IMG/VR virus record: IMGVR_UViG_3300034117_001294
Span: 62,001 to 126,000 of that record
Length of the DNA: 64,000 nt
Strand: one strand, 5' to 3'
The notes beneath the pieces were generated by a model, which saw only the letters and a program-made list of their open reading frames with translations, ran no database searches and was not told where the DNA came from. Shown here piece by piece: positions 20,084 through 36,577 of this stretch. The translations under genes were made by a program, and so were the position numbers. Position 1 is the first letter of the stretch. Every line of letters begins with the position of its first letter.

Positions 20084-20688
20084 AATTGTGCATAGTCCTC
20101 TGGCTTTAATACGTAATAGTGTGTTAGAATACCTTCAGCCCATGGCCACTTAGGCGGTTCTGTTTCGCGAATGTTAATGCGTGGTAAGAAAGCACGTAAC
20201 CGATTAATGATATATTCTTTGTCAATAAAGTCGTAGGCGATCATCCCGTTGACGTTTACATATACTTCTAAGTTATCTAACTTGGCTTCGTAGATAAAAC
20301 GCAATGCTTCCCAAATACTACCTTCTCCGCATTCGCCGTCGCTGATAAGACAATGTACCTTTCGAGTTCTGTCTGCTAGGGCATAACCGGTGGCAACAGT
20401 AAGCCCCATCCCGAGACTACCTGTACTACAATAGATACCACTGCCAACATCACGATGAGGATGTACCCCATGCTTGTGGAATAAAGATTCTGCATTTTGT
20501 CCTTCATATTTTTCCAATACAACATATAACGCTAGGGCCGCATGACCAGAACTTAAAATAAAGGGCTCGTCTATCTTTTTATTTTTATAAATTTCTTCAA
20601 TGATATTAACCGCATTAAGATTAGAACTAAGATGTCCAATCTTTTCTTTGTAGCTAATATCAATTACTCTACGTTCTACGCCATTCAT
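20080..20688 (-). CDS. transketolase-like TPP-binding subunit
   Basis: GHLSS, LSSGH, STGSLGMG, SDGECGEGSIWEA. Confidence 0.88.
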   Translation of the reverse strand: MNGVERRVIDISYKEKIGHLSSNLNAVNIIEEIYKNKKIDEPFILSSGHAALALYVVLEKYEGQNAESLFHKHGVHPHRDVGSGIYCSTGSLGMGLTVATGYALADRTRKVHCLISDGECGEGSIWEALRFIYEAKLDNLEVYVNVNGMIAYDFIDKEYIINRLRAFLPRINIRETEPPKWPWAEGILTHYYVLKPEDYAQL

Positions 20689-22004
20689 ACAAATAAACTC
20701 ATAAAGCCGTCAACCTTCTCACCAATGTAGGCAATCTGTTCCGGAGTAATAACAGGACTAGTACCATGAAAGAAAGTATTCTTCATAGTGTAGGTTGCTA
20801 CTGGAAAGTTATCACGTGCGTCTACAGGATTCATTAAATGACTATATGCAGGCTGCAACATAATATTGCCAGCAAAGTAAGGACGAGTTTGGATTAAATT
20901 TTCTTCTAAATAATCAACAATGTCCATTCGCTTAAACGGAGCACCTTCTCTAATAGTTAATGGAAAGGCAAACCAGCTGACATCTGCTTTGTCACGGGCA
21001 CGTGGCAAGTGAAAGAATTGTTCATACTTTTCATAGATCTTAAACAACAATTCATAGTTACGTTGACGCAGTTGATGAATCTCCGGTAGCTTTTTAATTT
21101 GCTCAAGGCCCATTGCACTTTGTAATTCAATCGGCTTTAGATTGTAACCAATTTCATCGTATACATATTTGTGATCAAAAATTTCGCCGGGCATCTCTGG
21201 AATCCATTCCTGGAAACGTTTGCCACACGAACCGCATTTTAACTTGTTAGCCTCCGGACCCACACAGTAACAGCCGCGGCCCCATTCTCGTAGACTGCGA
21301 ACAATAACTTCTTGTTGAGGATCATTCATTGCAACAAAGCCGCCTTCGCCCATGGTCATGTGGTGTGCTGGATAAAAACTGCACGAAGCCATTTCACCAA
21401 AGCTACCTAACGGTTTGCCGTTATATGTAGTACCTAGGCCGTCACAACAATCTTCTAACAGTACTAGATTATACTTGTTAACTAACTCCATGACTCGATC
21501 CATGTTAGGAGGATTTCCTAACACGTGAGCAAACGTAATAATTTTAATGTCTGGCTGTTCTTGTAGCAGTCGTTCTGCATGATCTAAATCGAGATTCAAT
21601 GTATCAATCTCAATGTCACAGAATACTGGTGTAAATTTATTTTGAAGTGTAGGATTAAGTGTTGTAGGAAAGCCTGCAATAGGCATTAACACTTTTGTAC
21701 CTTCTGGGAAGTTGTGTCCTCGTTTAGACTTCATTGCTGCCATCATCAGCAGATTGGCACTACTACCGCTATTAGTTAGTATGCCTCTTTCTTTACCGAA
21801 CTCTTTAGGGAATTGGCGTTCAAACTGAATGCTTTTATTTCCCATAACAAGCCAGCCATTTAATAAAGTCTCTGCGGCTGCTACGTATTCGTCTGCTGAA
21901 AAATGTGGGCCTGCGTAGTTAACAAAGTCCTTGCCCGCAGTCCATGTTTTGTTCTCTTGTTTTTCTTCGATGAACTGTCGAATTTGGTCTAAGATTTCTT
22001 TCAT
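20685..22004 (-). CDS. rfbH: CDP-6-deoxy-4-keto-hexose 3-dehydrase (RfbH/DdhC)
   Basis: NSGSSANL, EDCCD, SFYPAHHMTMGEGG, WGRGCYC, DHKY. Confidence 0.9.
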   Translation of the reverse strand: MKEILDQIRQFIEEKQENKTWTAGKDFVNYAGPHFSADEYVAAAETLLNGWLVMGNKSIQFERQFPKEFGKERGILTNSGSSANLLMMAAMKSKRGHNFPEGTKVLMPIAGFPTTLNPTLQNKFTPVFCDIEIDTLNLDLDHAERLLQEQPDIKIITFAHVLGNPPNMDRVMELVNKYNLVLLEDCCDGLGTTYNGKPLGSFGEMASCSFYPAHHMTMGEGGFVAMNDPQQEVIVRSLREWGRGCYCVGPEANKLKCGSCGKRFQEWIPEMPGEIFDHKYVYDEIGYNLKPIELQSAMGLEQIKKLPEIHQLRQRNYELLFKIYEKYEQFFHLPRARDKADVSWFAFPLTIREGAPFKRMDIVDYLEENLIQTRPYFAGNIMLQPAYSHLMNPVDARDNFPVATYTMKNTFFHGTSPVITPEQIAYIGEKVDGFMSLFV

Positions 22005-22007
22005 AGT

Positions 22008-22652
22008 TTATTTTACTACTTCGTTCATAAAATGTCTAGCCAGTTGGAGGCGAAGATCCAAACTAGTTCCGGGCCAGTGGATTAACCAATCACTGTTTTG
22101 CCAAGTACCATCGTTACCTAGTAGATCGTATTTGCTTTGATGCGGGTACAGGTCATTCTTATAAGCATTCAAGTATCGTTGCGGAACAATCTTAATTTTA
22201 TCTTTATTGTCTGGATACGAGTCAATCATAGCCTGTTGTTCTAAAAACATTGCAGTTTTATACTTAGGCCAGCTGTTATATATGTCTTGCAACCACTTTT
22301 TGCTCCAGGCTGTATTTTTAATTAAGAAACTGTCGTTGTTAATTTCATTGCAGTCTGTTGCTATAATTAGATCATAATCTGGAAGAATTTTATCCTCAAT
22401 TTTGATTGTGAAATTTGTGATCATAGCATCGCAGCCAGTCCACCAAACCCACTCAACTTCTTTCTGTGTTTCAAACAACTCTTTGATTAATCTGCATCTT
22501 TCAAAACCTCCAGTTATGTTCTTATCAAAACCGCTGGTCCAATTTATTCCTAGATATCCGTGACGTTCACAATACTGTTGCTTGTTCTGATTCCATGTTA
22601 GATCAGCAAGCGGTTGATATTTTTCGTCGTTTAAACTTACAACTGCGTACAT
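22008..22652 (-). CDS. GT34-like glycosyltransferase
   Basis: YCERHGY, WVWW..CDAMITN, EQQAM, IHWPG. Confidence 0.7.
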   Translation of the reverse strand: MYAVVSLNDEKYQPLADLTWNQNKQQYCERHGYLGINWTSGFDKNITGGFERCRLIKELFETQKEVEWVWWTGCDAMITNFTIKIEDKILPDYDLIIATDCNEINNDSFLIKNTAWSKKWLQDIYNSWPKYKTAMFLEQQAMIDSYPDNKDKIKIVPQRYLNAYKNDLYPHQSKYDLLGNDGTWQNSDWLIHWPGTSLDLRLQLARHFMNEVVK

Positions 22653-22660
22653 ATATGTCC

Positions 22661-23470
22661 TTAAAAGTAAAAGCCGTTAGCACGGGGAAACCATGTGTCT
22701 CCATAGCCACCGTGTGGTGTTTTTGTCTGTTCGTAATCAGCACGTACTTCGCACCAATAAGTCTTGCCTAAACCGATTGCAACACTCAATGCGGCACTCT
22801 GGTTTCCAATAAACATTTCACTGCCTTGAATAAGTCTTGCAACTTCTAGCAGGTCTTCTGTTTTCTGATAGTGTATTTTTGTTTTGAATGTATCTTCAAA
22901 GCTAGCATGTTCGTCAGGTGTGCCAACAAACGCACCATATTCTCCGATCTGATTCTCAATGAACTTTTGCTCAATCCATCCGCCGCCGCCTTCTGCTCCG
23001 TGTAGATGCCTGTTAGTTCTGTTCACAATAATAGGCTTGCCTGGAATATGAATTGGTTGTACGGGAGTCAACCAAGGCTCGTGTAACAATTTCTTTTTAA
23101 TTTCTGGATCGTGAATGTTCCAACCCATAGCAAGTGCATAACATTCTGTTTGATTGCCTTGCCAACCGCGGATTAGGTGCTGTTTCCAATGATCTAGCAG
23201 TTGAGGAAAGTCGTCTACTTCGTCTTTCCATACTGCAACTTTGCCAATATAGTCTTGTGCTTCTAACAATGGTGCTACAATGTCGAAGTCTTTTTGTGTT
23301 AGTCTGCCACTTGCTGGGCCTGCGTTAGGCCACCCTAAAACTTTTTGTGCAAATTCATCGTGATAGTTTAATCTCACGTATAGGTCGCCTGGACCAATCA
23401 TTCGCATAACGCAGAGACTATAAACAATGTCTCCAAAAGTTGAGTGTGTGATATAGTTTGTATTTTTCAT
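22661..23470 (-). CDS. glycosyltransferase-like protein (GT9-like)
   Basis: FGDIV, LLEVARLI..SEMFIGNQS...A.GLG. Confidence 0.55.
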   Translation of the reverse strand: MKNTNYITHSTFGDIVYSLCVMRMIGPGDLYVRLNYHDEFAQKVLGWPNAGPASGRLTQKDFDIVAPLLEAQDYIGKVAVWKDEVDDFPQLLDHWKQHLIRGWQGNQTECYALAMGWNIHDPEIKKKLLHEPWLTPVQPIHIPGKPIIVNRTNRHLHGAEGGGGWIEQKFIENQIGEYGAFVGTPDEHASFEDTFKTKIHYQKTEDLLEVARLIQGSEMFIGNQSAALSVAIGLGKTYWCEVRADYEQTKTPHGGYGDTWFPRANGFYF

Positions 23471-23557
23471 AAGCTCTTAAAATTATAGCTGTATTTAATT
23501 ATAACTGCAACACCTAGAAAAATTTAAGGCATTGTTGCCAAAAAACAACACTGGATC

Positions 23558-23760
23558 TTGACAAGACTAAATAAACACTATACAATAGAGACTAGTTTGT
23601 AAGTTAGGTAGAGAAATTTTTAGCCACAGTTAAAATAGTGGTTGACAAGAGAACTAAATAACTGTACAATTAAGGCATAGTTAGTTAGAAAAGTTGTTAA
23701 AAAACTTTTTAGTCAAAAGATTAAAAAGAGGTTGACAACAACACTAAATAACTGTATAAT
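23558..23760 (+). promoter_or_regulatory. three tandem sigma70 promoters, each with CTAAATA in the spacer
   Basis: TTGACA-17-TACAAT at 23558 and 23642; TTGACA-17-TATAAT at 23732. Confidence 0.9.
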
Positions 23761-23819
23761 TAACACATAGGCAGCAATGGTGCTGTCAATGTAAAGAAAG
23801 TTTTTAAAGAGAAAACAAA

Positions 23820-23969
23820 ATGCAATCGAATTTTAGACATCAACAATTTAATACGATGCCCAAACAGGCAGGCTTTAACGCCTCCAATTGGTTATCTATT
23901 GAGTGTGGTAGTCTATCATATGATCGCACACCAGAGATTACAAGGGTCCGGGAGGGCTGGGATGGTTAA
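23820..23969 (+). CDS. putative attenuator leader peptide (49 aa, all 20 amino acids)
   Basis: MQSNFRHQQFNTMPKQAGFNASNWLSIECGSLSYDRTPEITRVREGWDG; lies between the promoters and the terminator. Confidence 0.6.
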   Translation: MQSNFRHQQFNTMPKQAGFNASNWLSIECGSLSYDRTPEITRVREGWDG

Positions 23970-24000
23970 GTAACAACTTAATTACATTTCAAAACTTCAA

Positions 24001-24036
24001 GGACCCTAGGATTAAAACCCTGGGGTTTTTTGTTTT
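24001..24036 (+). terminator. intrinsic terminator (candidate attenuator)
   Basis: GGACCCTAGG-loop-CCTGGGGTTT then T-tract; 5' arm complementary to AGGGTCC at 23943-23949. Confidence 0.8.
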
Positions 24037-24048
24037 CCGCAAGGAAGA

Positions 24049-24204
24049 ATGATAGAGAAAAAGATTAGAGAAGCAGAGTTTACTAGACAGCATACGCTTA
24101 GTCCAGAGCAACTTAAAAAATTGCTCGAAGGCAAAATGGCTCGTGCTAGACAGTATTACGAAGCAGTATCAAAGAAGCGAGAGGTAATCAAGGTTGCCGA
24201 TTGA
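24049..24204 (+). CDS. hypothetical 51-aa basic protein
   Basis: AAGGA SD, MIEKKIREAEF... Confidence 0.55.
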   Translation: MIEKKIREAEFTRQHTLSPEQLKKLLEGKMARARQYYEAVSKKREVIKVAD

Positions 24205-24315
24205 ATCGCAAAGTGTGAATATACAGGAAACGAGGTCCTGGCTCTGCACTATAAACACAGAGCAAACGGGCGGTGACGAGGATGGCTTACCCTTATGTGG
24301 GTAAAAAAATTCGTC

Positions 24316-24408
24316 ATATTAAAGCATATACTTGCCTGACTGCAAACGTCGTGGTAAACTACTAGAGAAAGGGGTTCGAATCCCCGGGACTGGTATGTGC
24401 TTTAATAT
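24316..24408 (+). ncRNA. 16-bp clamp enclosing a partial tRNA (CTGCAAA loop plus T arm)
   Basis: ATATTAAAGCATATAC/GTATGTGCTTTAATAT; GGGG-TTCGAAT-CCCC inside. Confidence 0.55.
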
Positions 24409-24472
24409 ACACTCTCCAGTCACTGACTCTGAATCAGCTGACAGGCGTAGCCGGAGAGTGTTAACAATTAAT

Positions 24473-24559
24473 GGAGCGTGTTCCCTGTTGCCGGCTGTAA
24501 CCCGGTAGTCACATTAAGCAGGGTGGCGACAAGAGGTTCGATTCCTTCACGCTCCACCA
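24473..24559 (+). tRNA. tRNA-Tyr(GTA)-like, no D arm, 8-bp acceptor
   Basis: GGAGCGTG/CACGCTCC-ACCA, CTGTAAC loop, TTCGATT. Confidence 0.65.
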
Positions 24560-24565
24560 ATAATT

Positions 24566-24640
24566 CCTCTTGTAGCTCAATGGCTAGAGCAATCGGCTGA
24601 TAACCGGTAGACATAAGTTCGATTCTTATCGAGAGGACCA
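24566..24640 (+). tRNA. tRNA-Ile(GAT)
   Basis: cloverleaf, CTGATAA loop, CCA. Confidence 0.9.
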
Positions 24641-24647
24641 AGTTTAT

Positions 24648-24722
24648 ACCGCAGTAGTCCTCTGGGAGGGCAACGGATTGTCTATCCGACTTAGGTGAGT
24701 TCGATCCTCACACACGGAGCCA
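24648..24722 (+). tRNA. tRNA-Asp(GTC), chimeric with mispaired acceptor
   Basis: TTGTCTA loop; 3' part identical to the Asn tRNA at 26253-26286. Confidence 0.6.
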
Positions 24723-24807
24723 TTATAGAAGCACATACAGATCCGCCCGAGTAGTAAGGGAGATAGCGACTAACCGTTGAAGGACTGTTTAAATGTGTTT
24801 CTATAAT

Positions 24808-24882
24808 GGGGGCAGCAGAGGGCTGCGGAGTTGCCTTGCAAGCATCTTGTCTAGAGGGGTTCGATACCCCCGGCCTCCACCA
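24808..24882 (+). tRNA. tRNA-Ala(TGC), atypical D arm
   Basis: G3:U70, CTTGCAA loop, CCA. Confidence 0.7.
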
Positions 24883-24889
24883 ATTTTAT

Positions 24890-24965
24890 CTCTCTAAAGC
24901 GTTATCAGGTTGCGTACACGGTTTGGGGCCGTGTGGTCCAGGTTCGAATCCTGGTAGGGAGACCA
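24890..24965 (+). tRNA. tRNA-Pro(TGG)
   Basis: cloverleaf, TTTGGGG loop, CCA. Confidence 0.88.
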
Positions 24966-24971
24966 ATTAAT

Positions 24972-25047
24972 GCACCTTTAGCTGATGTGGTCATAGCGGC
25001 GGTCTGAAGAACCGTTGAAGTTGGTTCGATTCCAACAGGGTGTACCA
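24972..25047 (+). tRNA. tRNA-Phe(GAA)
   Basis: CTGAAGA loop, CCA. Confidence 0.9.
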
Positions 25048-25052
25048 AATTT

Positions 25053-25127
25053 GCCCTTTTATCCTTAATGGTAGAGGTCCTGTTTTGTAATCAGGGTGTG
25101 TGGGTTCGATTCCTGCAAGGGGCACCA
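25053..25127 (+). tRNA. tRNA-Thr(TGT)
   Basis: TTTGTAA loop, CCA. Confidence 0.88.
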
Positions 25128-25137
25128 AGCAAATTAT

Positions 25138-25212
25138 ACTCCGGTCGTCTAGTGGCTAGGACGCCAGCCTTTCAAGTTGGAGAAGCGGGATCGAAACCCG
25201 TTCGGAGTACCA
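25138..25212 (+). tRNA. tRNA-Glu(TTC)
   Basis: CTTTCAA loop, CCA. Confidence 0.88.
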
Positions 25213-25219
25213 AGTTTAT

Positions 25220-25306
25220 GGAGATGTAGGAAAATTGGTAACCCCAGTGGACTGTAAATCCGCCGCCCGAAAGGCACTACTGGTTCGACTCCAGTCGTCT
25301 CCACCA
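25220..25306 (+). tRNA. tRNA-Tyr(GTA)
   Basis: CTGTAAA loop, long variable arm, CCA. Confidence 0.92.
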
Positions 25307-25311
25307 TTTTA

Positions 25312-25386
25312 GGTCTGTTCGTATAGAGGTTATTACTGCGGATTGTCTATCCGCTTACGGGGGTTCGATTCCCCCACAGACCGCCA
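25312..25386 (+). tRNA. tRNA-Asp(GTC)
   Basis: TTGTCTA loop, GCCA. Confidence 0.9.
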
Positions 25387-25389
25387 AGT

Positions 25390-25587
25390 TTTGTAAGTGT
25401 CAGCAAGAGAAAGACTCGCTAGGAAGATTCTTCGAAGGTCAACCTAGTGTTAAAGTAGGGCGGGTTCGAGTACCGTAAATGCAATGGTGCACCTATGTCA
25501 AGTATTCCAAGTGACTTACCTCCTCCCGTCCGGACTTGCATGAATCGGGTGAATGGTTGCGATTACAGAGGTGCAACTACTTACAAA
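25390..25587 (+). ncRNA. CAGCAA-clamp variant RNA
   Basis: TTTGTAAGT-GTCAGCAA ... ACTTACAAA, internal hairpins. Confidence 0.5.
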
Positions 25588-25597
25588 TTCATTTCAG

Positions 25598-25626
25598 TTG
25601 ACAACTACTGCAAAAGGTTGTATAAT
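25598..25626 (+). promoter_or_regulatory. sigma70 promoter
   Basis: TTGACA-17-TATAAT. Confidence 0.85.
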
Positions 25627-25740
25627 ACTAACTTAAACAAAAAGGAAAATTGACATGAAACGTTCAGGTAAACTGTAGTGTCATCCTAGACCCCCGTATG
25701 GTCCTGGATGGCACGTGAAAGACAATTCTTTACGATCCAT

Positions 25741-25816
25741 CCACAGCTGGCGTTAACGGTAGCGTACTCGGCTCTTAACCGATGAGGTGTCAGTTCGAAT
25801 CTGACGCTGTGGACCA
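25741..25816 (+). tRNA. tRNA-Lys(CTT)
   Basis: CTCTTAA loop, CCA. Confidence 0.88.
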
Positions 25817-25819
25817 TAT

Positions 25820-25894
25820 GGGGGTATAATTCAACGGCTAGAATAGCTGGCTTTTAACCAGTCTATCAGGGTTCGATTCCCTGTGCCCCTACCA
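25820..25894 (+). tRNA. tRNA-Lys(TTT)
   Basis: CTTTTAA loop, CCA. Confidence 0.9.
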
Positions 25895-25974
25895 TATGCA
25901 AACACATTACTGCACAGCATTTTGACTTCCAGGTCTTTTTGTATGTTGTGGTCGTCTGTAGTGTGTTTACATAT

Positions 25975-26050
25975 GGTGATGTAGCATAGTGGCTAATGCA
26001 GTTCCTTCATACGGAAAAGATCGTCGGTTCGAGTCCGACCATCACTACCA
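25975..26050 (+). tRNA. tRNA-Met/Ile2(CAT)
   Basis: TTCATAC loop, 1-72 paired, CCA. Confidence 0.85.
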
Positions 26051-26056
26051 ATTTAT

Positions 26057-26131
26057 GGAGCTATCGTCTATCGGTTAGGACATCTGGTTTTCATCCAGGC
26101 AAGCGGGGTTCGATTCCCCGTAGCTCTTCCA
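26057..26131 (+). tRNA. tRNA-Glu(TTC)
   Basis: TTTTCAT loop, CCA. Confidence 0.88.
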
Positions 26132-26135
26132 AGTT

Positions 26136-26195
26136 TAGGATCGGTTCAGCAAACAAAAAGCTAACTTTTGGTGTCTAGCGACAAAAACGATCCTG
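26136..26195 (+). ncRNA. CAGCAA-clamp RNA 1 (TTG anticodon-like loop)
   Basis: TAGGATCG-GTTCAGCAA...CGATCCTG; inner hairpin loop TTTTGGT. Confidence 0.7.
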
Positions 26196-26205
26196 TTATT
26201 TCTAT

Positions 26206-26284
26206 TCCGTGAAATCCAAGCATGGTGCAAGGACTTGACTGTTAATCAATGATTAGGTGAGTTCGATCCTCACACACGGAGCCA
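26206..26284 (+). tRNA. tRNA-Asn(GTT)
   Basis: CTGTTAA loop, GCCA. Confidence 0.85.
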
Positions 26285-26809
26285 TTCATTAATATCCCAA
26301 CGCTGATTAATCCTAAACAAGATTACAACCCGCGGAAGGATATTACAATTTTGAAAAGCATGTGGAACTTGTGTATTAACAATTGCAGGCTCATTTGTTT
26401 CCACTTTTCCAACAAACTCACAGTCACTGTGGTTGTATAGCATGTAGGTAACATTGCCTTGCCCTGTACCTTGTATTCTCGGCTCTGTAGTTGAAGAATA
26501 AAAATTTAGAAAAGTATTATCAAATCCAAGGATAGGAATGTTTAGACTATAAACAAACCCTCCTGTATCTTTGTGAATAGGATATGTTCCTTTAAGACTT
26601 ACGTTAATAACTGCATAATGAAGATATTGATATAGTCCGTATGTTTGAAGTTGTTCTTTGAGTTCTGGAATATCAGTAAACTCCGAAGCTTTAACATATT
26701 GAAATAAAGGCTCATTAAGTTTTGTATGTTTGAGAACAACATCAACCATTTTATTTCTAATGGTGTCAATGTTTTCAAACTTGATTGATCTATAAAGTGC
26801 CGGATCCAT
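26270..26809 (-). CDS. 2OG-Fe(II)/cupin-like oxygenase
   Basis: IHKD...SLNIP...PHAFQN...R. Confidence 0.65.
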   Translation of the reverse strand: MDPALYRSIKFENIDTIRNKMVDVVLKHTKLNEPLFQYVKASEFTDIPELKEQLQTYGLYQYLHYAVINVSLKGTYPIHKDTGGFVYSLNIPILGFDNTFLNFYSSTTEPRIQGTGQGNVTYMLYNHSDCEFVGKVETNEPAIVNTQVPHAFQNCNILPRVVILFRINQRWDINEWLRV

Positions 26810-26833
26810 TCCGATATTTATAGCAAGTATTAT

Positions 26834-26909
26834 ACCGTCGTAGTAATCTGGGTATTACACCTCCCTGTCTAGGAGATCAAGGCGAGTTCGATTCTCGTCG
26901 GCGGTGCCA
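26834..26909 (+). tRNA. tRNA-Asp(GTC)
   Basis: CTGTCTA loop, GCCA. Confidence 0.85.
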
Positions 26910-26913
26910 ATTT

Positions 26914-26976
26914 TAGGATGCGTTCAGCAAACTTTATACATTCAACTTTTAATTGAAAACGTAAAAAAGCATCCTG
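26914..26976 (+). ncRNA. CAGCAA-clamp RNA 2 (Lys TTT anticodon stem-loop)
   Basis: TAGGATGC-GTTCAGCAA...GCATCCTG; TTCAA-CTTTTAA-TTGAA. Confidence 0.75.
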
Positions 26977-26987
26977 TTTTATTTTGT

Positions 26988-27061
26988 TGGTCTATGGTGT
27001 AATGGTAACACAACAGACTTTGACTCTGTCGTTCCAGGTTCGAGCCCTGGTAGGCCTGCCA
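26988..27061 (+). tRNA. tRNA-Gln(TTG)
   Basis: CTTTGAC loop, GCCA. Confidence 0.9.
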
Positions 27062-27070
27062 ACAATTCAT

Positions 27071-27147
27071 ACCCGCGTAACTCAGTGGACTAGAGTACTA
27101 CGCTACGAACGTAGGAGTCGGAGGTTCGAATCCTTCCGTGGGTGCCA
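27071..27147 (+). tRNA. tRNA-Arg(ACG)
   Basis: CTACGAA loop, GCCA. Confidence 0.9.
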
Positions 27148-27715
27148 AGTACTTGGTTAGCATATTGATAGATCGTTGCATAGAGGGTCTATATACACAT
27201 CCATCTTTTAAAGATGATAATACTAGACTGATACAATATCTATCTTCGATAGGATTAATGATATTATGAGGTACTCCGACTTGCACAACTGAAGGAAATC
27301 CTATAGGGGCTGAAAACAACAAATCAACTTCAGTTCGATTATATCCTATGTAATGTGAGTTAACCGCAGATAAACTTTGCTCAGTGCGAACAATATTATC
27401 TTTTGGTTTGTACCAATTCATAATGCTGTTAGCACCTCCAAATATCCAATTTATTTTAGTAAAGTCTCCATGTTTAACATCAACATGTATACCGCTAAAA
27501 AAATTAGGAGTAGAGTAGAACACTTCGCAATGATCTGGAAAAATATCTAAATCTGCTAGCAAGTCTAGCATGTCCGAGTTAATATGTTCCTTGATACTAA
27601 TTGAAGAATGATAGGATTTTTTGCCATTAACTATGTTAGGAAGACTTGTTAAACTATGTTTGTTTTTTAACAAGTCAACATTAAAATTTAAGTTATGATG
27701 ATACGTTGTCATCAT
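27098..27715 (-). CDS. 2OG-Fe(II)/cupin-like oxygenase
   Basis: IHVD...KINW...WY...PHNIIN...RYCIS; 3' end runs antisense into tRNA-Arg. Confidence 0.65.
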   Translation of the reverse strand: MMTTYHHNLNFNVDLLKNKHSLTSLPNIVNGKKSYHSSISIKEHINSDMLDLLADLDIFPDHCEVFYSTPNFFSGIHVDVKHGDFTKINWIFGGANSIMNWYKPKDNIVRTEQSLSAVNSHYIGYNRTEVDLLFSAPIGFPSVVQVGVPHNIINPIEDRYCISLVLSSLKDGCVYRPSMQRSINMLTKYLAPTEGFEPPTPTFVA

Positions 27716-27740
27716 TTATTTACCGAAAGACTTATTAGGT

Positions 27741-27811
27741 GTGGCTATGTTGTAATGGTAGCAACCTAGACTGTGACTCTGGTAGTACGGGTTCGAGTCC
27801 CGTTAGTCACC
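27741..27811 (+). tRNA. tRNA-His(GTG), no encoded G-1 or CCA
   Basis: CTGTGAC loop, C73; flanked by a 10-bp inverted repeat. Confidence 0.85.
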
Positions 27812-27850
27812 CCTAATAAGTTTTTGCCACATTGTGGCACCAATAAATAC

Positions 27851-27942
27851 GGAAAGTAATGCAGGGGAGTTGGTTCCCCGACCAGCCTTGAAAACTGGGT
27901 TCTCAGAAATGGGATGGGGTTCGACTCCTCTGCTTTCCACCA
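27851..27942 (+). tRNA. tRNA-Ser(TGA), 8/4-type fold with long D stem
   Basis: GGAAAGTA/TGCTTTCC, CTTGAAA loop, 4-bp T stem. Confidence 0.7.
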
Positions 27943-27947
27943 ATAAT

Positions 27948-28460
27948 ATGAACGAAGATTATTTTATCCCTGTTAACACTGACATTAATTTTTTACCTAA
28001 AGTAAAAGAATTTATTCCGAATGCAATTTGGAAATGGGTTCCGTCTATGTTTATTGCTACAAATTTATCTAGTACGCACATCGGTGATGATCAATTACTG
28101 AGTAAAATTCATAAGGAATTTTTAGGAGAGTTAAATCTTTATAAAATTCCATGTAAATCTGTCTATGGATGGCACCAGGATAAAAATTCAATAGGGTGTT
28201 CATTAAATATGGCATTAGATCGATATCATTGTCATACATTGTTTTCAGTTGGGAATCACGGAACTCCTTTCTTACAAAAAGTAATTGAACTTGAGTACGA
28301 TCCTAATACATGGTATGCATTTAATTCAAAACAGGTGCATACTGTAATAAATCTAGACGAAAAAGATAGATATCTACTTTCATATGTACTACCGGGAATT
28401 TTTTCCTACACAGATCTAAAATCTTGGTTAGTACAGCATACATATACTTCTCTGATGTAA
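27948..28460 (+). CDS. 2OG-Fe(II)/cupin-like oxygenase
   Basis: WHQD...SLN...VHTVIN...RYLLS; start moved to ATG 27948 after the tRNA. Confidence 0.65.
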   Translation: MNEDYFIPVNTDINFLPKVKEFIPNAIWKWVPSMFIATNLSSTHIGDDQLLSKIHKEFLGELNLYKIPCKSVYGWHQDKNSIGCSLNMALDRYHCHTLFSVGNHGTPFLQKVIELEYDPNTWYAFNSKQVHTVINLDEKDRYLLSYVLPGIFSYTDLKSWLVQHTYTSLM

Positions 28461-28519
28461 TGGCAGCATAGCGGTCTCCAAAACCGTTCGTTGGGGTTCG
28501 AGTCCCTAGGGGAGTGCCA
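28446..28519 (+). tRNA. tRNA-Trp(CCA)
   Basis: CTCCAAA loop, GCCA. Confidence 0.88.
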
Positions 28520-28524
28520 GTTTA

Positions 28525-28639
28525 AGGATACATACAGCAATGTCTAACGACACGTTGGTTCGATTCCAACATTATCCGCTTTGGATGATTCGCTCAATGG
28601 TAGAGCAATGGGCTTCATGCCCATCGAAACTGTATCCTG
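28525..28639 (+). ncRNA. CAGCAA-clamp RNA 3 containing a circularly permuted tRNA (TCA anticodon)
   Basis: order T arm, closed acceptor, D arm, anticodon arm inside AGGATACA/TGTATCCT. Confidence 0.75.
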
Positions 28640-28648
28640 TTTTATTAT

Positions 28649-28726
28649 GTAGGGGTTCCAGAGAGGCTTAATGGCACTGATTGCAAACCAGTTGATTCGT
28701 GGGTTCAAATCCCACTCCCTACTCCA
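28649..28726 (+). tRNA. tRNA-Cys(GCA)
   Basis: TTGCAAA loop, U73 CCA. Confidence 0.88.
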
Positions 28727-28731
28727 TTTAT

Positions 28732-28805
28732 GCGTGGTTAGTTTAATGGTAGAACCAGACGTTGCCAACGTTTAAGCAGGAGTTCGATTCTCCTACCCCG
28801 CACCA
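28732..28805 (+). tRNA. tRNA-Gly(GCC)
   Basis: TTGCCAA loop, CCA. Confidence 0.88.
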
Positions 28806-28825
28806 AGTTAGTTGTAAATATTGTT

Positions 28826-29395
28826 ATGTATTTTGTTAAATTAAAAGAACAATTTTTTCTAACACTAGATGCAAATATTGCAAAAGAAGAATTTGCAAAT
28901 TTTGGATCTGTAATCGGCAATGAATTTAAAGGTATACAATATAATAGAATACCGCAGTATTGTACTGATACTATGTTAGAAGTCGTTCCGGAAAATTATA
29001 GAAAACATTTTACATCGGGCATTATGAAAATTAATGTACCGTATGCAAGACCACACACTGATAGCGGAGTAACCGCAGTATTAAATTTTTATGTACAGAC
29101 TGCTGATGCTGTGACAGTATTTTATAATCAGCTTACTGAAGATTCGGTTTTAACAAAGATAAAAAATCAAACTAACGGAAGTGTCTTTAAATTAAAAGAT
29201 CTAGTTCCTGCTGCAAATTTTAAAGCATTGCCGGGAGACGTTTGGTTACTGGATGTAACGAAGCCGCATTCTGTTATTGCTGCATCCGCAGTTGATAGAG
29301 TAGCATTCTGTTTACACACTAACAGTTTATCTTTCGAAGAAGTCAAAAAAATATTTGAATGCCCGGGTGGTGGAATGGTAGACACACTTTACTGA
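28826..29395 (+). CDS. 2OG-Fe(II)/cupin-like oxygenase
   Basis: PHTD...LNFY...PHSV...R; 3' end runs into a tRNA. Confidence 0.65.
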   Translation: MYFVKLKEQFFLTLDANIAKEEFANFGSVIGNEFKGIQYNRIPQYCTDTMLEVVPENYRKHFTSGIMKINVPYARPHTDSGVTAVLNFYVQTADAVTVFYNQLTEDSVLTKIKNQTNGSVFKLKDLVPAANFKALPGDVWLLDVTKPHSVIAASAVDRVAFCLHTNSLSFEEVKKIFECPGGGMVDTLY

Positions 29396-29446
29396 GGTAA
29401 GGAAAAACACTAGGATGTGAGAGTTCGAATCTCTCCTCGGGAACCA
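29361..29446 (+). tRNA. tRNA-Leu(GAG), degenerate anticodon arm
   Basis: Leu-type D arm, CTGAGG loop, T arm, CCA. Confidence 0.6.
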
Positions 29447-29451
29447 TGTAT

Positions 29452-29528
29452 GCCTTCGTACGCTAATTGGGAGTGCGGCTTGCCTTAGAAGCAGGTGGTT
29501 GGGGGTTCGAATCCGCCCGAAGGTACCA
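29452..29528 (+). tRNA. tRNA with TAG (Leu) anticodon, short variable loop
   Basis: CTTAGAA loop, CCA. Confidence 0.75.
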
Positions 29529-29666
29529 TTTTTGTTATCCCGTTTGATCCCAAAGTGTTCGCATAATGGGTAGGGTATCGAGCAGTGCGGCGATATAGTT
29601 GCCATTGCGTCGTGAGGTTGTGGAACAATAAACTGATAAAATCCACAATATAACAAATCTGTTTAT

Positions 29667-29743
29667 GCCCCGTTACGCTAATTGGTAGTGCGGATTCTCT
29701 CAAAAGGAGTTGGCTGTCTGTTCGAATCAGACACGGGGTACCA
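29667..29743 (+). tRNA. tRNA with CAA (Leu) anticodon, short variable loop
   Basis: CTCAAAA loop, CCA; D arm near-identical to the tRNA at 29452. Confidence 0.75.
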
Positions 29744-29748
29744 ATTAC

Positions 29749-29823
29749 AGTTCCTTATTTCAGAGGTAGAATATCACATTGACATTGTGAAGGTCACTGG
29801 TTCGATCCCAGTAGGAACTACCA
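29749..29823 (+). tRNA. tRNA-Val(GAC)
   Basis: TTGACAT loop, CCA. Confidence 0.88.
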
Positions 29824-29824
29824 A

Positions 29825-30400
29825 TTATATAATTAAAGGTTTGAAAAGCTCAACTATTTCTTCCCAAGTAGAAAATTTTGCAGTTGCCCGAATGCTTAGA
29901 CACCAGCGAATATTTGCAATGTCCCGATTAGCAACATTATGAGGTATATTAGTTCTAACTAAACAAGGCCCTTCAATTCTAGCAGATTCAATGCAGACAA
30001 CATCGGCTCGATCAAAATGAATATATGGTGTGCCGCCGCTTGACATTTTAATATTATTTTGTTTACCGGGCAACGGGGAATACCAAAACATTTCTGAATT
30101 AGCAGACCCCCATACTATATTGATACCCCATACACAATGAGTAACTCCGTTAATAGTATCAATATGAATGTCTAGATTGCTGTTAGCATTACCTCTAAAA
30201 AAAATACATTCTGAAAGAATATCTATTCCGAAATTTTTAAAAAATTCAATAGACTCATCTGTAAGAAATTCTTTATGGTCAACTAACTTCATAGCCCAAT
30301 TGTGCTCTGATTTAGAATAAACCAAATCAATATAATGTTGCATGTCTATATTATCTTTTAATATTTTGACAGGAATATTTAATTTGTAATGGTTTTGCAT
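29825..30400 (-). CDS. 2OG-Fe(II)/cupin-like oxygenase
   Basis: IHID...GIN...WY...PHNVAN...RWCLS. Confidence 0.65.
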   Translation of the reverse strand: MQNHYKLNIPVKILKDNIDMQHYIDLVYSKSEHNWAMKLVDHKEFLTDESIEFFKNFGIDILSECIFFRGNANSNLDIHIDTINGVTHCVWGINIVWGSANSEMFWYSPLPGKQNNIKMSSGGTPYIHFDRADVVCIESARIEGPCLVRTNIPHNVANRDIANIRWCLSIRATAKFSTWEEIVELFKPLII

Positions 30401-30412
30401 TACGTATTTATT

Positions 30413-30487
30413 GCCCTAGTAGCTCAGTGGTAGAGCACCGTCTTGATAAGGCGGGTGTCCGTGGATCGTTCCCACGCTAGGGTACCA
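30413..30487 (+). tRNA. tRNA-Ile(GAT), unusual T loop
   Basis: TTGATAA loop; T loop ATCGTTC. Confidence 0.8.
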
Positions 30488-30506
30488 AAAAAAAAATAAA
30501 AAAGAC

Positions 30507-30575
30507 TTGACAGAGTCTTAAATAGACTGTATAATAAACACATACGCTAGCAACTGTTAGCACTGTTCTTTAAAA
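30507..30575 (+). promoter_or_regulatory. sigma70 promoter followed by boxB-like hairpin and boxA
   Basis: TTGACA-17-TATAAT; GCTAGC-AACT-GTTAGC; TGTTCTTTAAAA at 30564. Confidence 0.75.
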
Positions 30576-30591
30576 AGTTAAGTTGGTATTT

Positions 30592-30675
30592 GCCCCGGTG
30601 GTGTAATGGTAGCCACGCTGGTCTTAGAAGCCAGTGGAGAAATCCGTGTCGGTTCGAGTCCGACCTGGGGCACCA
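30592..30675 (+). tRNA. tRNA-Leu(TAG)
   Basis: CTTAGAA loop, long variable arm. Confidence 0.92.
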
Positions 30676-30790
30676 TATACAAACATACTATAGGTTGGGT
30701 TAGATTCGCGGTCTAACTATTTGGGTCTGTAGTGTAGCCCTCCAAAACTACACGCGACTAAGATACATAGTGTGTTTCTATATGGTGAAT

Positions 30791-30874
30791 GCGAGAGTGG
30801 AGAAATGGTATACTCAGGAGACTTAAAATCTCCCGTCGAAAGGCATGCGGGTTCGAGTCCCGCCTCTCGTACCA
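30791..30874 (+). tRNA. tRNA-Leu(TAA)
   Basis: CTTAAAA loop, long variable arm. Confidence 0.92.
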
Positions 30875-30883
30875 AACAATTAC

Positions 30884-30958
30884 CTGGCGTTCGTTCAATG
30901 GATAGGACAGCATTCTTCTAAAGTGCGAATAGAGGTTCGATTCCTCTACGCCGGACCA
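30884..30958 (+). tRNA. tRNA-Arg(TCT)
   Basis: CTTCTAA loop, CCA. Confidence 0.9.
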
Positions 30959-30979
30959 AGTTTTTTATTAAGGATCAAA

Positions 30980-31213
30980 ATGAGAGCAAGAACATCTGCA
31001 ACTTTTAAGTTGAGTAAGCGAACAAAAACAATGTTAGCATTGATGAAGTTTAAAAATAATCAAGACCGTCATGGTTTTAAAAATGCAATGATTGATGCAC
31101 AAGTGGCAGCAAGCATTGTTCCAAAATCAGAAAAGCGTGATCGTAACGCACCTCGCCCACAAGGCACTAGTTACGTGACCAATGACACTGGTACTGCAAG
31201 TACTAGCGTTTGA
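30980..31213 (+). CDS. hypothetical basic protein
   Basis: AAGGA SD; start at ATG 30980. Confidence 0.6.
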   Translation: MRARTSATFKLSKRTKTMLALMKFKNNQDRHGFKNAMIDAQVAASIVPKSEKRDRNAPRPQGTSYVTNDTGTASTSV

Positions 31214-31224
31214 GTAAAAAATAT

Positions 31225-31300
31225 TCCGCAGTAGCTCAGTCGGTAGAGTAGAAGACTGTTAATCTTTTGGTCCGTGGTTCGAGCCCACGCTGTGGAGCCA
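31225..31300 (+). tRNA. tRNA-Asn(GTT)
   Basis: CTGTTAA loop, GCCA. Confidence 0.92.
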
Positions 31301-31308
31301 AGTTAAAT

Positions 31309-31398
31309 GGTGCGGTCCTATAATGGTATTAGAGCGGATTGCTAATCCGTCGATCGGTGAAAGCCGGTTTCTGAGTTCGAGTCTCAGTCGCACCGCCA
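31309..31398 (+). tRNA. tRNA-Ser(GCT)
   Basis: TTGCTAA loop, long variable arm, GCCA. Confidence 0.9.
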
Positions 31399-31405
31399 AG
31401 TTTTT

Positions 31406-31469
31406 TAGGATCAGTTCAGCAAACATAATAAAAATTTCATTTATACTGAAACATAAAAAGTTGATCCTG
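31406..31469 (+). ncRNA. CAGCAA-clamp RNA 4 (TAT anticodon stem-loop)
   Basis: TAGGATCA-GTTCAGCAA...TGATCCTG; TTTCA-TTTATAC-TGAAA. Confidence 0.72.
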
Positions 31470-31478
31470 TTATTTTAT

Positions 31479-31570
31479 GCCCCTGTAGTTTAATGGTAGA
31501 ACAGCGGATTTATATCCCGTATGCAACAGATAATTGGTTAGTGTGGGTTCGACTCCCGCCGGGGGTACCA
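31479..31570 (+). tRNA. tRNA-Ile(TAT) with long variable region
   Basis: TTTATAT loop, CCA. Confidence 0.75.
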
Positions 31571-31728
31571 AGTTTTGAGATAGACGATGAGATGAGTCCC
31601 TTGTATTCTAGTGCCCTATTCTTGAGCATGACACACCAGTAGAATTGTACAAGGTCTGCATAAACTCTCTCATTCGAGACAACCCAGCGAGTCCTTAAGA
31701 AAGATAGTTGGTCTCTCAAAAACCTATT

Positions 31729-31789
31729 TAGGTTAATTACAGCAATAAAAAATGGCTGTCTGCTAGGACTTTAAACTAGTATTAACCTG
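31729..31789 (+). ncRNA. CAGCAA-clamp RNA 5
   Basis: TAGGTTAA-TTACAGCAA...TTAACCTG. Confidence 0.7.
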
Positions 31790-32081
31790 TTGAAAACCCG
31801 GTTTACTGTTTTACGTTATTAAAACAGCGTCCCTGAAACGATAGAACAGGGGGTACACTAGGACCTGACCTTACAGTCTTCTGTTCGGAGATACTGAAAA
31901 CTGCCTAGGGGCGGGAACAAAACCCGTCCAGATGGAAAAATTAGTGGACAGAGTAACCGCTCAGTTTGGGGCTCATGTGGTGTGAGTGGCTAGACACTTT
32001 ATTGAAATGCATTAGGTATCGTATCAAGTAGTGTAACTACTTTGCCAGCGGTGTTAGTGTGTTTCAATAAATAGATTTAAT

Positions 32082-32155
32082 GCGGGGTTAGTTTAGTGGT
32101 AAAACGAGATCCTTCCAAGTTCAAGTCGCGAGTTCGATTCTCGCACCCCGCTCCA
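32082..32155 (+). tRNA. tRNA-Gly(TCC)
   Basis: CTTCCAA loop, U73 CCA. Confidence 0.9.
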
Positions 32156-32163
32156 AGTTTTTT

Positions 32164-32239
32164 GCGTCCTTAACTCAGTTGGTAGAGTTCTGCCTTTACA
32201 CGGCAGCTGTCGGCGGTTCGAGCCCGTCAGGACGTACCA
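32164..32239 (+). tRNA. tRNA-Val(TAC)
   Basis: TTTACAC loop, CCA. Confidence 0.92.
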
Positions 32240-32246
32240 AGATAAT

Positions 32247-32323
32247 CGGTGTGTAGCTCAGCTTGGTAGAGCTCTGCGTTTGGGACGCAGTGGTCGCATG
32301 TTCGAATCGTGTCACACCGACCA
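32247..32323 (+). tRNA. tRNA-Pro(TGG)
   Basis: TTTGGGA loop, CCA. Confidence 0.92.
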
Positions 32324-32488
32324 ATAAACTCTCCCTTACATACGGAGTACAATGAGATAAGTAGTATGTAAACGAATTTAGACCGGACCTGTATCCATAC
32401 TCCGGTTCCGCTGAAGCGAAAACAGGATGGGCTGCTCTCACGGGGTTTGATGGTTTCCCGACACAACAATAATCATCAACAAGAATTA

Positions 32489-32562
32489 CGCGGGTAGGGT
32501 GGTCACCACACCGGTCTCATAAGCCAGGTGCATCGGAGGTTCGAATCCTTCACCCGCATCCA
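32489..32562 (+). tRNA. initiator-like tRNA-Met(CAT) with reduced D arm
   Basis: C1:A72 mismatch, CTCATAA loop, CCA. Confidence 0.7.
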
Positions 32563-32567
32563 TATTT

Positions 32568-32642
32568 GGGCTGATAGTGATAATGGGAGCACAGTGGCTT
32601 TGCAAGCCTCGGGTGGGAGTTCGATCCTCCCTCGGTCCACCA
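32568..32642 (+). tRNA. tRNA-Ala(TGC)
   Basis: G3:U70, TTTGCAA loop. Confidence 0.88.
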
Positions 32643-32657
32643 ACAAAGGAATGTTAT

Positions 32658-32795
32658 ATGAGTACAAAAGATACACTTGATAAAGCATATGGCAATATTC
32701 CCAAAGAGCCGGTATCATTTATACAATTTGATTTACCGACATTTAGAGGAATTAAGTATTACTGGCTGCGGCTAGTAAGACTTTTTACTCGTTAA
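32658..32795 (+). CDS. hypothetical 45-aa protein
   Basis: AAGGA SD, ATG 32658. Confidence 0.5.
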   Translation: MSTKDTLDKAYGNIPKEPVSFIQFDLPTFRGIKYYWLRLVRLFTR

Positions 32796-32806
32796 GTTTT
32801 GACCTT

Positions 32807-32924
32807 TAGGTTCTTTTCAGCAATTAAAAATAATCTTTCTGTAAAAAAGAGGGGCTGGGTTCGAATCCCGGGCGTGAGTTGGTCTTCACGTTGGTGTAGT
32901 GGTAGCACGTAAAAAGAGAACCTG
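32807..32924 (+). ncRNA. CAGCAA-clamp RNA 6 containing a circularly permuted tRNA (GTA anticodon)
   Basis: order anticodon arm, T arm, closed acceptor, D arm inside AGGTTCT/AGAACCT. Confidence 0.75.
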
Positions 32925-32955
32925 TTTAACTTTAACTTTAACTTCAAGGAAACAC

Positions 32956-33183
32956 ATGGCACGTTTAACGTCACAAGCAGCGGTAGAGATGGTAGGTAAT
33001 CGTTTTGATCTAGTATTGATTGCATCAATTCGTGCTAGAGAATTAAAGCGTGGGCATATGCCTATGGTTACCTGTAATAACGGATTCAACGTCACTGCAC
33101 TTCGAGAAATTGAAGCAGGTAAAGTGGGACGTGATTATTTGGAAAAGCTTCGCAAGCCTCCTAAAAAGAGTGAACACTATTAA
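32956..33183 (+). CDS. rpoZ: RNA polymerase omega subunit
   Basis: MARLT...VGNRFDLVLIAS.RAREL...ALREIEAG; SD before ATG 32956. Confidence 0.85.
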   Translation: MARLTSQAAVEMVGNRFDLVLIASIRARELKRGHMPMVTCNNGFNVTALREIEAGKVGRDYLEKLRKPPKKSEHY

Positions 33184-33188
33184 AGATC

Positions 33189-33647
33189 ATGCAGCCAATC
33201 TATCTTAATAAAGAAGTCGATAAGACCGGCGTTGAGCTAGAAATTTTACACGTTGAACAAATAGCCAATAGTCCAGTCTATACATTTTTTATCAGACACA
33301 TGGCCGAATTGATAGATTCCGGGTTCGCAATGGCACGAACTAGTTGGAATGACAATGATTGTGGAGCCATTTATGCAGAAGAGAATGGTGTTATAGTAGG
33401 GGCCATAATCTACAGTAGAGCATACCTACACAAAAATTGCCTGTGGATCGAACTTAGTGCAGTACGTAGTGATTGCCGGAAACGCGGCATTTATTCAGTG
33501 TTACATAATTATTTTGAAATGCTTGCAAAAAAAATGAACTGCGATTCTATTTCTAGTAAAGTACATAAAAACAATGTAATTCGATTATCTTCAGCAGAAA
33601 AAGTTGGCATGAATATTGCTTTCTACCAAATGGTTAAAATGATCTAA
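33189..33647 (+). CDS. GNAT acetyltransferase
   Basis: V..D.RKRGI motif A; KVH..N. Confidence 0.7.
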   Translation: MQPIYLNKEVDKTGVELEILHVEQIANSPVYTFFIRHMAELIDSGFAMARTSWNDNDCGAIYAEENGVIVGAIIYSRAYLHKNCLWIELSAVRSDCRKRGIYSVLHNYFEMLAKKMNCDSISSKVHKNNVIRLSSAEKVGMNIAFYQMVKMI

Positions 33648-33688
33648 TAAATATTAAACAATATGCGTGAATACTTGCATTAATTAAT

Positions 33689-34438: not shown

Positions 34439-34440
34439 AA

Positions 34441-34905: not shown

Positions 34906-34910
34906 TTACT

Positions 34911-34946
34911 GCCCTGCTTGACAGGGCTTTCTTTTGACTGTATAAT
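34911..34946 (+). promoter_or_regulatory. terminator hairpin overlapping a sigma70 promoter
   Basis: GCCCTG-CTTGA-CAGGGC-TTTCTTTT; TTGACA 34918, TATAAT 34941. Confidence 0.7.
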
Positions 34947-34974
34947 ATGTACTTACTACACTTAAGGAAACATC

Positions 34975-36576: not shown

Positions 36577-36577
36577 T

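Follow-up and report, generated by a model that had tools for sequence, protein, structure and literature searches.

Why phages carry large sets of tRNA genes and how they time their expression are open questions. At the entrance of one array of tRNA genes, in a 64,000-nucleotide window (positions 62,001 to 126,000 of the 228,849-bp IMG/VR contig IMGVR_UViG_3300034117_001294, from an uncultured giant phage), a 49-codon open reading frame containing all 20 amino acids lies between three promoters and an intrinsic terminator. Could this short gene be a switch through which the state of translation controls transcription of the tRNA genes? An earlier note, made from the sequence alone, had proposed that it is an attenuator that samples much of the tRNA pool, so that stalling after loss of a tRNA would free an antiterminator and switch on the phage tRNAs. 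It based this on the amino-acid content, on 34 different codons (among them five different Ser and four different Arg codons) and on a 7-nt complementarity between the end of the ORF and the terminator. Every item of that observation is in the sequence. The interpretation is partly supported, and on the main points it holds up much better than the note's own caveats suggested, although the support, which is strong statistically and structurally, is comparative and computational only.

A conserved short ORF before the tRNA array

ARAGORN finds 38 tRNA genes on the + strand between 24566 and 40398, and all the features described here lie on the same strand. Upstream are three tandem consensus promoters: TTGACA-17-TACAAT at 23558-23586 (11 of 12 matches), which is the first unit of a self-similar tandem repeat of about 84 nt; TTGACA-17-TACAAT at 23642-23670; and TTGACA-17-TATAAT at 23732-23760 (12 of 12), whose -10 element ends 60 nt before the ATG. 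A small hairpin is predicted in the 5' UTR close to the transcription start (23770-23787). It is not universal in relatives, since the diverged locus L090 lacks it, but a similar hairpin follows a promoter within the array at 30507. A weak Rfam hit to freshwater-2 RNA in the 5' UTR (20 bits against a cut-off of 49.9) was disregarded. A weak Shine-Dalgarno-like AGAGA (23808-23812) precedes the ATG by 8-12 nt, and the GAGA(A) motif is kept at this distance in most relatives.

The ORF itself (23820-23969) has 49 sense codons plus TAA, 20 amino-acid types and 34 distinct codons, including TCG, TCC, TCT, AGT and TCA for Ser and AGA, CGC, AGG and CGG for Arg. For the window alone these features are only mildly unusual. 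All 20 residues in 49 codons occur in 2.3% of random ORFs, in 3.2% of 49-aa windows of this phage's long ORFs, and in 1 of 68 mechanical ORFs of 45-53 codons, that one being this ORF. Codon diversity, on which the note had laid weight, is not significant: at least 34 codons are reached by 11% of random ORFs and by 13 of 68 spurious ORFs of similar length, and 32.5±1.9 codons are expected given the peptide and the phage's codon usage (P = 0.31). Three of the different codons (AGG, GTC, CGG) are dictated by an RNA motif, GGGTCC, read in frame, and the family-wide excess of codon diversity (z = +1.7) could likewise come from the RNA motifs. We also compared the leader codons with the phage's own anticodons, and found that 30 of 34 codons can be read by phage tRNAs and that 26 of 31 anticodons are sampled, but judged this uninformative because the tRNA set covers nearly every codon box.

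The decisive evidence is comparative, and a comparison with related phages had been named beforehand as a test. A word-indexed search found 69 clusters of homologous peptides at 90% identity, a scan of IMG/VR with a peptide alignment gave 80 loci on contigs of up to 383 kb, and a profile search of 1.84 billion representative proteins gave 126 hits, of which about 118 are peptides of 41-73 aa. In total the family comprises 238 distinct peptides from uncultured phage contigs. In all 75 loci with more than 700 nt of downstream sequence, the ORF is followed by 4-22 tRNA genes on the same strand (within up to 3.5 kb of downstream sequence) and preceded by 1-3 TTGACA-N17-TAtAAT promoters, the last -10 element ending 47-67 nt before the ATG. 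Strongly diverged members (loci L006, L090, L092 and L094) show the same layout. In contrast, no deposited phage genome among 50,697 gave a match by blastn of the region, tblastn of the flanking gene or tblastn of the leader peptide; the cultured relatives of this phage in that set are distant, Methylophilales phage Melnitz being the nearest with 51% identity on one protein, and Pelagibacter phage HTVC008M reaching 36%. Pfam and PHROGs gave no family for the peptide, and Rfam gave none for the leader RNA.

The frame is open in all 61 unique nucleotide versions, while frames +1 and +2 carry 2.7 and 4.6 stops on average, and dN/dS over the ORF body is about 0.45; translation is inferred from conservation. 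RNAalifold on a codon alignment finds no conserved structure in the body, so that conservation there is at the level of the peptide or the codons. A long hairpin predicted over codons 1-36 in the window is not conserved, and was rejected as a part of the element. Synonymous sites are less free than usual, with entropies of 30.1, 28.4 and 33.2 at codon positions 1, 2 and 3, and the leaders prefer codons that are rare in the phage's own genes: GAG makes up 97% of Glu codons in the leaders against 23% in the phage's genes.

Downstream of the terminator, the first gene is a 51-aa ORF (24049-24204) with its own Shine-Dalgarno sequence (AAGGAAG), conserved in some relatives and without a significant match to a family. 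It is followed by a conserved structured RNA of unknown kind together with tRNA-like elements that ARAGORN missed (24215-24556), and then by a first block of seven tRNA genes for Ile, Pro, Phe, Thr, Glu, Tyr and Asp (24566-25386), which would be reached by read-through before the next promoter at 25598. Two internal consensus promoters, at 25598 and 30507, lack the leader and feed later parts of the array. The proposed switch would therefore gate entry from the triple promoter into the first block (the small ORF, the unknown RNA and seven tRNAs), and not the whole array.

Two alternative structures at the end of the leader

The intrinsic terminator (24003-24036), found as a terminator-like site at 23999-24030 followed by a T run, has a stem formed by ACCCTAGG (24003-24010) and CCTGGGGT (24019-24026), extendable to 23999, and a T tract at 24026-24036; it folds at -16.2 kcal/mol and is conserved in all relatives. 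The note had matched AGGGTCC (23943-23949) with GGACCCT (24001-24007) in the 5' arm of the terminator and had counted it as a weakness that this antiterminator core was only 7 bp long. It is instead the basal helix of a 65-nt, roughly 25-bp hairpin (23943-24007) with three helices: P1 pairs AGGGUCC (23943-23949) with GGACCCU (24001-24007), P2 pairs GGAG (23952-23955) with CUUC (23995-23998), and P3, the apical helix, pairs 23958-23971 with 23976-23991 and holds the stop codon in its 5' strand. The predicted energy is -28.8 kcal/mol (z = -6.35, with 0 of 200 shuffles folding as well), and when both structures are allowed the hairpin wins and the terminator is lost. Because the last strand of the hairpin is also the 5' arm of the terminator, the two structures exclude each other.

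All 59 unique 3' leader sequences fold into the same P1/P2/P3 architecture, with a mean of -24.2 kcal/mol against -16.2 for their terminators. RNAalifold on the MAFFT alignment recovered only the terminator, because the variable apical part is misaligned, and was replaced by folding of each sequence and anchor-based counts of pairs. P1 is paired at all seven positions in 59 of 59. The position that is A...T in the window is A-U in 41, G-C in 14, G-U in 4 and A-C in none, while locus L063 has GGGTTC/GAACCC and locus L008 has GGGTTTTT/AAAAACCC. These last changes fall on bases that pair only with the U tract in the terminator fold, and the constraint is therefore specific to the antiterminator. 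On the MAFFT alignment (A3) 3 pairs and 16 cells show changes on both sides, which 0 of 500 shuffles reach and for which the slid controls are clearly lower; compensatory changes occur at three P1 positions and in P3. The hairpin loops and the sequence of P3 vary freely but P3 keeps pairing, the flanks of the stop codon showing GC, AT, GT and TA types.

The tail of the ORF (23937-23969, codons 40-49 and the TAA stop at 23967-23969) overlaps the 5' half of this hairpin, and its peptide sequence is variable. GGGTCC is kept in two reading frames: the P1 start falls in frame 0 (the R-V-R frame) in 42 of 61 unique ORFs and in frame 2 (the G-S frame) in 19. Even so, the stop codon is paired in the 5' strand of P3 in 43-44 of 49 unique hairpins, and P1 starts 21-24 nt before the stop in 56 of 61 and 9 nt after the conserved Glu codon. 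The note had worried that its segment lies about 20 nt before the stop codon, but with the stop inside the antiterminator this is not a problem, since it is the geometry that a ribosome-operated attenuator needs.

Amino-acid content of the leader peptide

Of the 238 unique family peptides, 192 hold all 20 residue types and 234 hold at least 19. Some manage all 20 in 41-43 residues (family peptides P0162, P0186, P0172 and P0190), and the very divergent 58-aa leader of L006 also has all 20. Among representatives of clusters at 50% identity, 86 of 118 hold all 20 in 41-55 aa, whereas random peptides with the family's own composition and lengths do so in 4.2%, and windows of 39 aa in this phage's proteins in 0.43%. 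The neighbouring 51-aa ORF has 17 types.

Since conserved positions and shared ancestry could fake this result, we simulated evolution on the family tree with site-specific residue frequencies, starting from an all-20 consensus. Setting the rate from mean pairwise identity was degenerate, and per-site maximum-likelihood rates were used instead. In the close set, 109 of 124 peptides have all 20 types against 63±14 simulated (maximum 103 in 1000); for the body alone (36-40 aa, up to the Glu of the D-R-x-P-E motif) the figures are 103 of 124 against 49±13 (maximum 89); and for the 50% representatives they are 86 of 118 against 26±5 (maximum 45). Completeness thus exceeds the tree-aware nulls by more than 3 SD in the close set and more than 10 SD in the diverse set, and it appears to be under selection, although the null models are simple, with independent sites, a tree built from about 48 residues and possible alignment error.

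The signal comes from residues that are not anchored in conserved columns. Cys appears in 36 alignment columns, yet 102 of 118 peptides have it, with a mean of 1.03 per peptide and a variance/mean of 0.29, and His and Tyr behave in the same way. An alignment-free test, counting the peptides that hold a residue in 0, 1 or 2+ of four regions, gave 17/86/15 for Cys against 34.6/55.3/28.1 expected if regions were independent, 1/73/44 for Tyr against 17.8/48.8/51.4, and 2/106/10 for His against 8.5/93.7/15.8 (permutation P below 0.0002 for each). When one of these residues is lost from one place, it is present somewhere else. Completeness is nevertheless not absolute, as Cys is missing in 11 of 124 peptides of the close set and 16 of 118 of the diverse set. 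Nor does it always reside in the body of the ORF (23820-23936, codons 1-39, from Met to the Glu of D-R-x-P-E), which we take as the proposed sensing part. In the window the body holds 19 of 20 types, Val occurring only at codon 43 inside P1, where a stall would block the antiterminator; in the diverse set only 57 of 109 peptides have all 20 in the body alone, and Val, Tyr or Cys sometimes come only from the tail.

Composition alone does not explain the strongly conserved motifs W24, D35-R36-x-P38-E39 and K-Q-[AG]-G, which point to a sequence-specific role as well. M1 and W24 are invariant, and D35, R36 and P38 are invariant or nearly so. E39 is invariant in four alignments (A2, A4, A5 and the 61-sequence codon alignment), while some diverse representatives lack the D-R-x-P-E motif, and the spacing between W and P varies within the family. 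AlphaFold2 gave no confident fold for the peptide (pLDDT 59.5, pTM 0.12), which argues only weakly against a folded microprotein given 49 residues and 40 sequences.

A candidate attenuator and its alternatives

Our results are best explained, with somewhat better than even confidence, if the stretch 23558-24036 is a ribosome-mediated transcription attenuator at the entrance of the tRNA array. In this view, three tandem sigma-70 promoters would transcribe the leader. On RNA without a ribosome the hairpin would form first and be more stable, the terminator could not form, and RNA polymerase would read on into the small ORF, the unknown RNA and the tRNA genes. A ribosome translating without delay would reach the stop codon inside the apical helix and, taking the standard ribosome footprint, with the stop codon in its A site would cover P2 and P3 and abut P1, so that P1-P3 would melt, the hairpin could not form, GGACCCU would be free, the terminator would form about 66 nt downstream and transcription would end. 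A delay anywhere in codons 1 to about 38 would leave the hairpin free to fold as soon as it is made and would give read-through. As the body holds 19 residue types in the window and all 20 in most relatives, the element would report whether every kind of aminoacyl-tRNA (or translation as a whole) is available and would raise phage tRNA transcription when any one is short, a negative feedback on tRNA supply.

What the comparative analysis shows, by computation only, is the conservation of the ORF, selection for compositional completeness (within the limits of the null models), two alternative structures supported by covariation, and the strict linkage to tRNA arrays, and in these respects the proposal of the note was supported by every computational test that we ran. 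That the leader is translated, that translation and the supply of charged tRNA toggle the switch, the direction of the response and the physiological trigger are inferred from the anatomy, and the triggers considered (starvation, tRNA-cleaving defence nucleases such as the anticodon nucleases named by the note, or decay or mismatch of the host tRNA pool during infection) are speculative. Several observations also weigh against the model. Each amino acid occurs only 1-5 times, whereas classical attenuators need runs of regulatory codons to respond to moderate starvation, so that single codons would respond only to severe loss; the Shine-Dalgarno-like motif is weak, as the note had said; the internal promoters bypass the element; and no pause or protector hairpin was found. 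The conserved motifs, the place of Val inside P1 in the window, the peptides whose body alone lacks a residue type and those without Cys do not fit it well either.

If this reading is correct, which in its fullest form we regard as about as likely as not, this would be the first attenuator whose leader peptide is selected to contain every amino acid: a 20-valent sensor of aminoacyl-tRNA supply that would give jumbo phages homeostatic control of their own tRNA genes, switching them on when any host tRNA species is depleted. It would extend attenuation from sensing one or a few amino acids to sensing the whole decoding capacity of the cell, would offer a concrete feedback model for phage tRNA supply, and would be a compact, portable part of about 220 nt that reports translation capacity. 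No regulation of a phage tRNA array beyond promoters and processing is known to us, and full-text literature searches found none and no description of such an element. The comparative signal is unusual in itself, because residues are conserved in presence but not in position, which is selection on the composition of a peptide rather than on its sequence.

A less likely possibility is that the attenuator is real but that its signal is specific rather than general. The conserved motifs (W ... D-R-x-P-E) could make the nascent chain arrest the ribosome in response to a ligand or factor, as with TnaC, SecM or the erm leaders, or a trans-acting protein or RNA could bind the hairpin, and holding all 20 amino acids would then be secondary. 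The invariant residues and the unusually constrained synonymous sites favour this idea, and the evidence for the alternative structures serves it equally well. However, a ribosome arrested with P38 or E39 in the P site would cover P1, which favours termination, so that the logic would have to be inverted. The variable spacing between W and P does not fit a fixed geometry in the exit tunnel, the freely varying loops and P3 sequence leave no conserved pocket or protein site, Rfam finds no T-box or riboswitch, and this reading does not explain why Cys, His and Tyr move but are retained.

More doubtful still is that this is an ordinary, highly expressed early small-protein gene with its own terminator, in which the long hairpin would be an mRNA-stability or RNase III processing element separating the leader mRNA from the tRNA precursor, the tRNAs would be transcribed by leaky read-through and from internal promoters, and the all-20 composition would be incidental. 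The dN/dS of the peptide, the strong tandem promoters, the internal promoters and the second small ORF with its own Shine-Dalgarno sequence speak for it. Against it, the hairpin and the terminator share seven nucleotides and both pairings are kept through compensatory changes, including at bases that pair only with the U tract in the terminator, and selection therefore acts on both mutually exclusive folds. The free tail read in two frames with the stop codon kept in P3, the absence of a predicted fold and of a Pfam or PHROG family, the excess of completeness over the tree-aware nulls and the linkage to tRNA arrays in 75 of 75 loci also speak against it. A chance ORF with chance complementarity in a non-coding spacer, which the window alone might have allowed, is refuted by hundreds of homologues with a conserved frame, structure and context.

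Among known systems, the element is closest to the leader-peptide attenuators of enterobacterial amino-acid operons (trpL, hisL, leuL, pheL, and especially the multivalent thrL and ilvL of ilvGMEDA, which already respond to 2-3 amino acids). It shares with them a short leader ORF, an intrinsic terminator before the regulated genes, an antiterminator that shares a strand with the terminator, and a placement of the ORF end by which a ribosome that reaches it would block the antiterminator while one stalled earlier would permit it. It differs in having no runs of regulatory codons, each of the 20 residues being present about 1-5 times instead and that completeness being conserved. No pause or protector hairpin (1:2), which synchronises ribosome and polymerase and gives termination when the leader is untranslated, was found, the non-conserved hairpin over codons 1-36 being the only candidate, so that the predicted state without translation is read-through rather than super-attenuation, unlike in trp. 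The stop codon also lies inside the apical helix of the antiterminator, and the cargo is the tRNA genes of a phage, not biosynthetic enzymes.

Leaders that sense general translation inhibition (ermC/ermB, cat and cmlA leaders, the vmlR, bmrCD and lmo0919 attenuators, and the topAI leader toiL) resemble it in that any slowing of the ribosome on a short ORF remodels the downstream RNA and switches on the cargo, the signal being the state of translation rather than one metabolite. They respond to antibiotics, usually through specific nascent-chain contexts, several act on translation initiation or Rho rather than on an intrinsic terminator, and none is reported to need a compositionally complete peptide or to control tRNA genes, full-text searches having found no such case. 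T-box riboswitches also couple the charging state of tRNA to read-through of a terminator by way of an antiterminator, but a T-box binds one uncharged tRNA directly, through a specifier loop in Stem I and the conserved T-box sequence in the antiterminator bulge, and has no ORF; here there was no Rfam match at E up to 10 over 23760-24580 or at E up to 1 over 22000-42000, and the loops of the hairpin are not conserved. Finally, the pyrBI and pyrE attenuators have a leader ORF of about 44 codons in which the distance between ribosome and polymerase decides termination, but there a closely following ribosome prevents the terminator directly, without an antiterminator, and the signal is UTP-dependent pausing, whereas here fast translation is predicted to promote termination.

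Non-coding elements in and around the tRNA array

A conserved structured RNA of unknown kind lies directly behind the attenuator, or behind one small ORF, at 24215-24330 in the window and 79-272 nt after the leader stop in the related loci L015, L016, L017, L024, L029, L031, L079, L085, L090 and others. It has motifs such as GGAAACGAGG and AACGGGCGG and hairpins that covary in RNAalifold. It has no match in Rfam, and it may be the first regulated product. tRNA-like elements that ARAGORN did not call, or called oddly, are found at 24472-24556, 27851-27938, about 24373-24387, and 29361-29446. Two of them match the tRNA-Sec model below its threshold (30.7 and 35.6 bits), so they may be tRNAs with a long variable arm, for example Ser-UGA; there is a canonical T-arm near 24375, and one ‘tRNA-???’ was called with a two-base anticodon. 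A weak match to the Y RNA-like YrlA model (25.9 bits, E = 0.09) lies between tRNA genes at 28525-28641.

Promoters and leader codon usage

The triple promoter (23520-23760) is a tandem repeat of units of about 84 nt, about 74% identical to one another, of which relatives carry one, two or three. Two perfect consensus promoters (12 of 12), at 25598-25626 and 30507-30535, lie inside the tRNA array with no leader ORF or attenuator behind them, and the one at 30507 is followed by the same AACACATA-plus-hairpin start as the promoter at 23732. When the leader ORFs of the related loci L010-L089 were compared with the long ORFs of the window, the leaders were found to strongly prefer codons that are rare in the phage's own genes: GAG (97% against 23%), and also ACG, GCC, CCC, CGG, AGG and TCG, while His is always CAT. 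This could make the leader a more sensitive sensor, or it could reflect RNA constraints.

Neighbouring protein-coding genes

In the diverged relative L006, a 120-aa Cys-rich ORF that looks like an HNH-type endonuclease (3194-3556, - strand) sits between the attenuator and the first tRNA, which suggests a mobile insertion into the putative regulated unit. Elsewhere in the window (11478-13532) there is a 684-aa protein annotated in the relatives Melnitz and HTVC008M as an adenylate/guanylate cyclase and, upstream of the promoters, a divergent block (20685-23470) encodes an aminotransferase (PHROG 3139) and a GMA12/MNN10-type glycosyltransferase.
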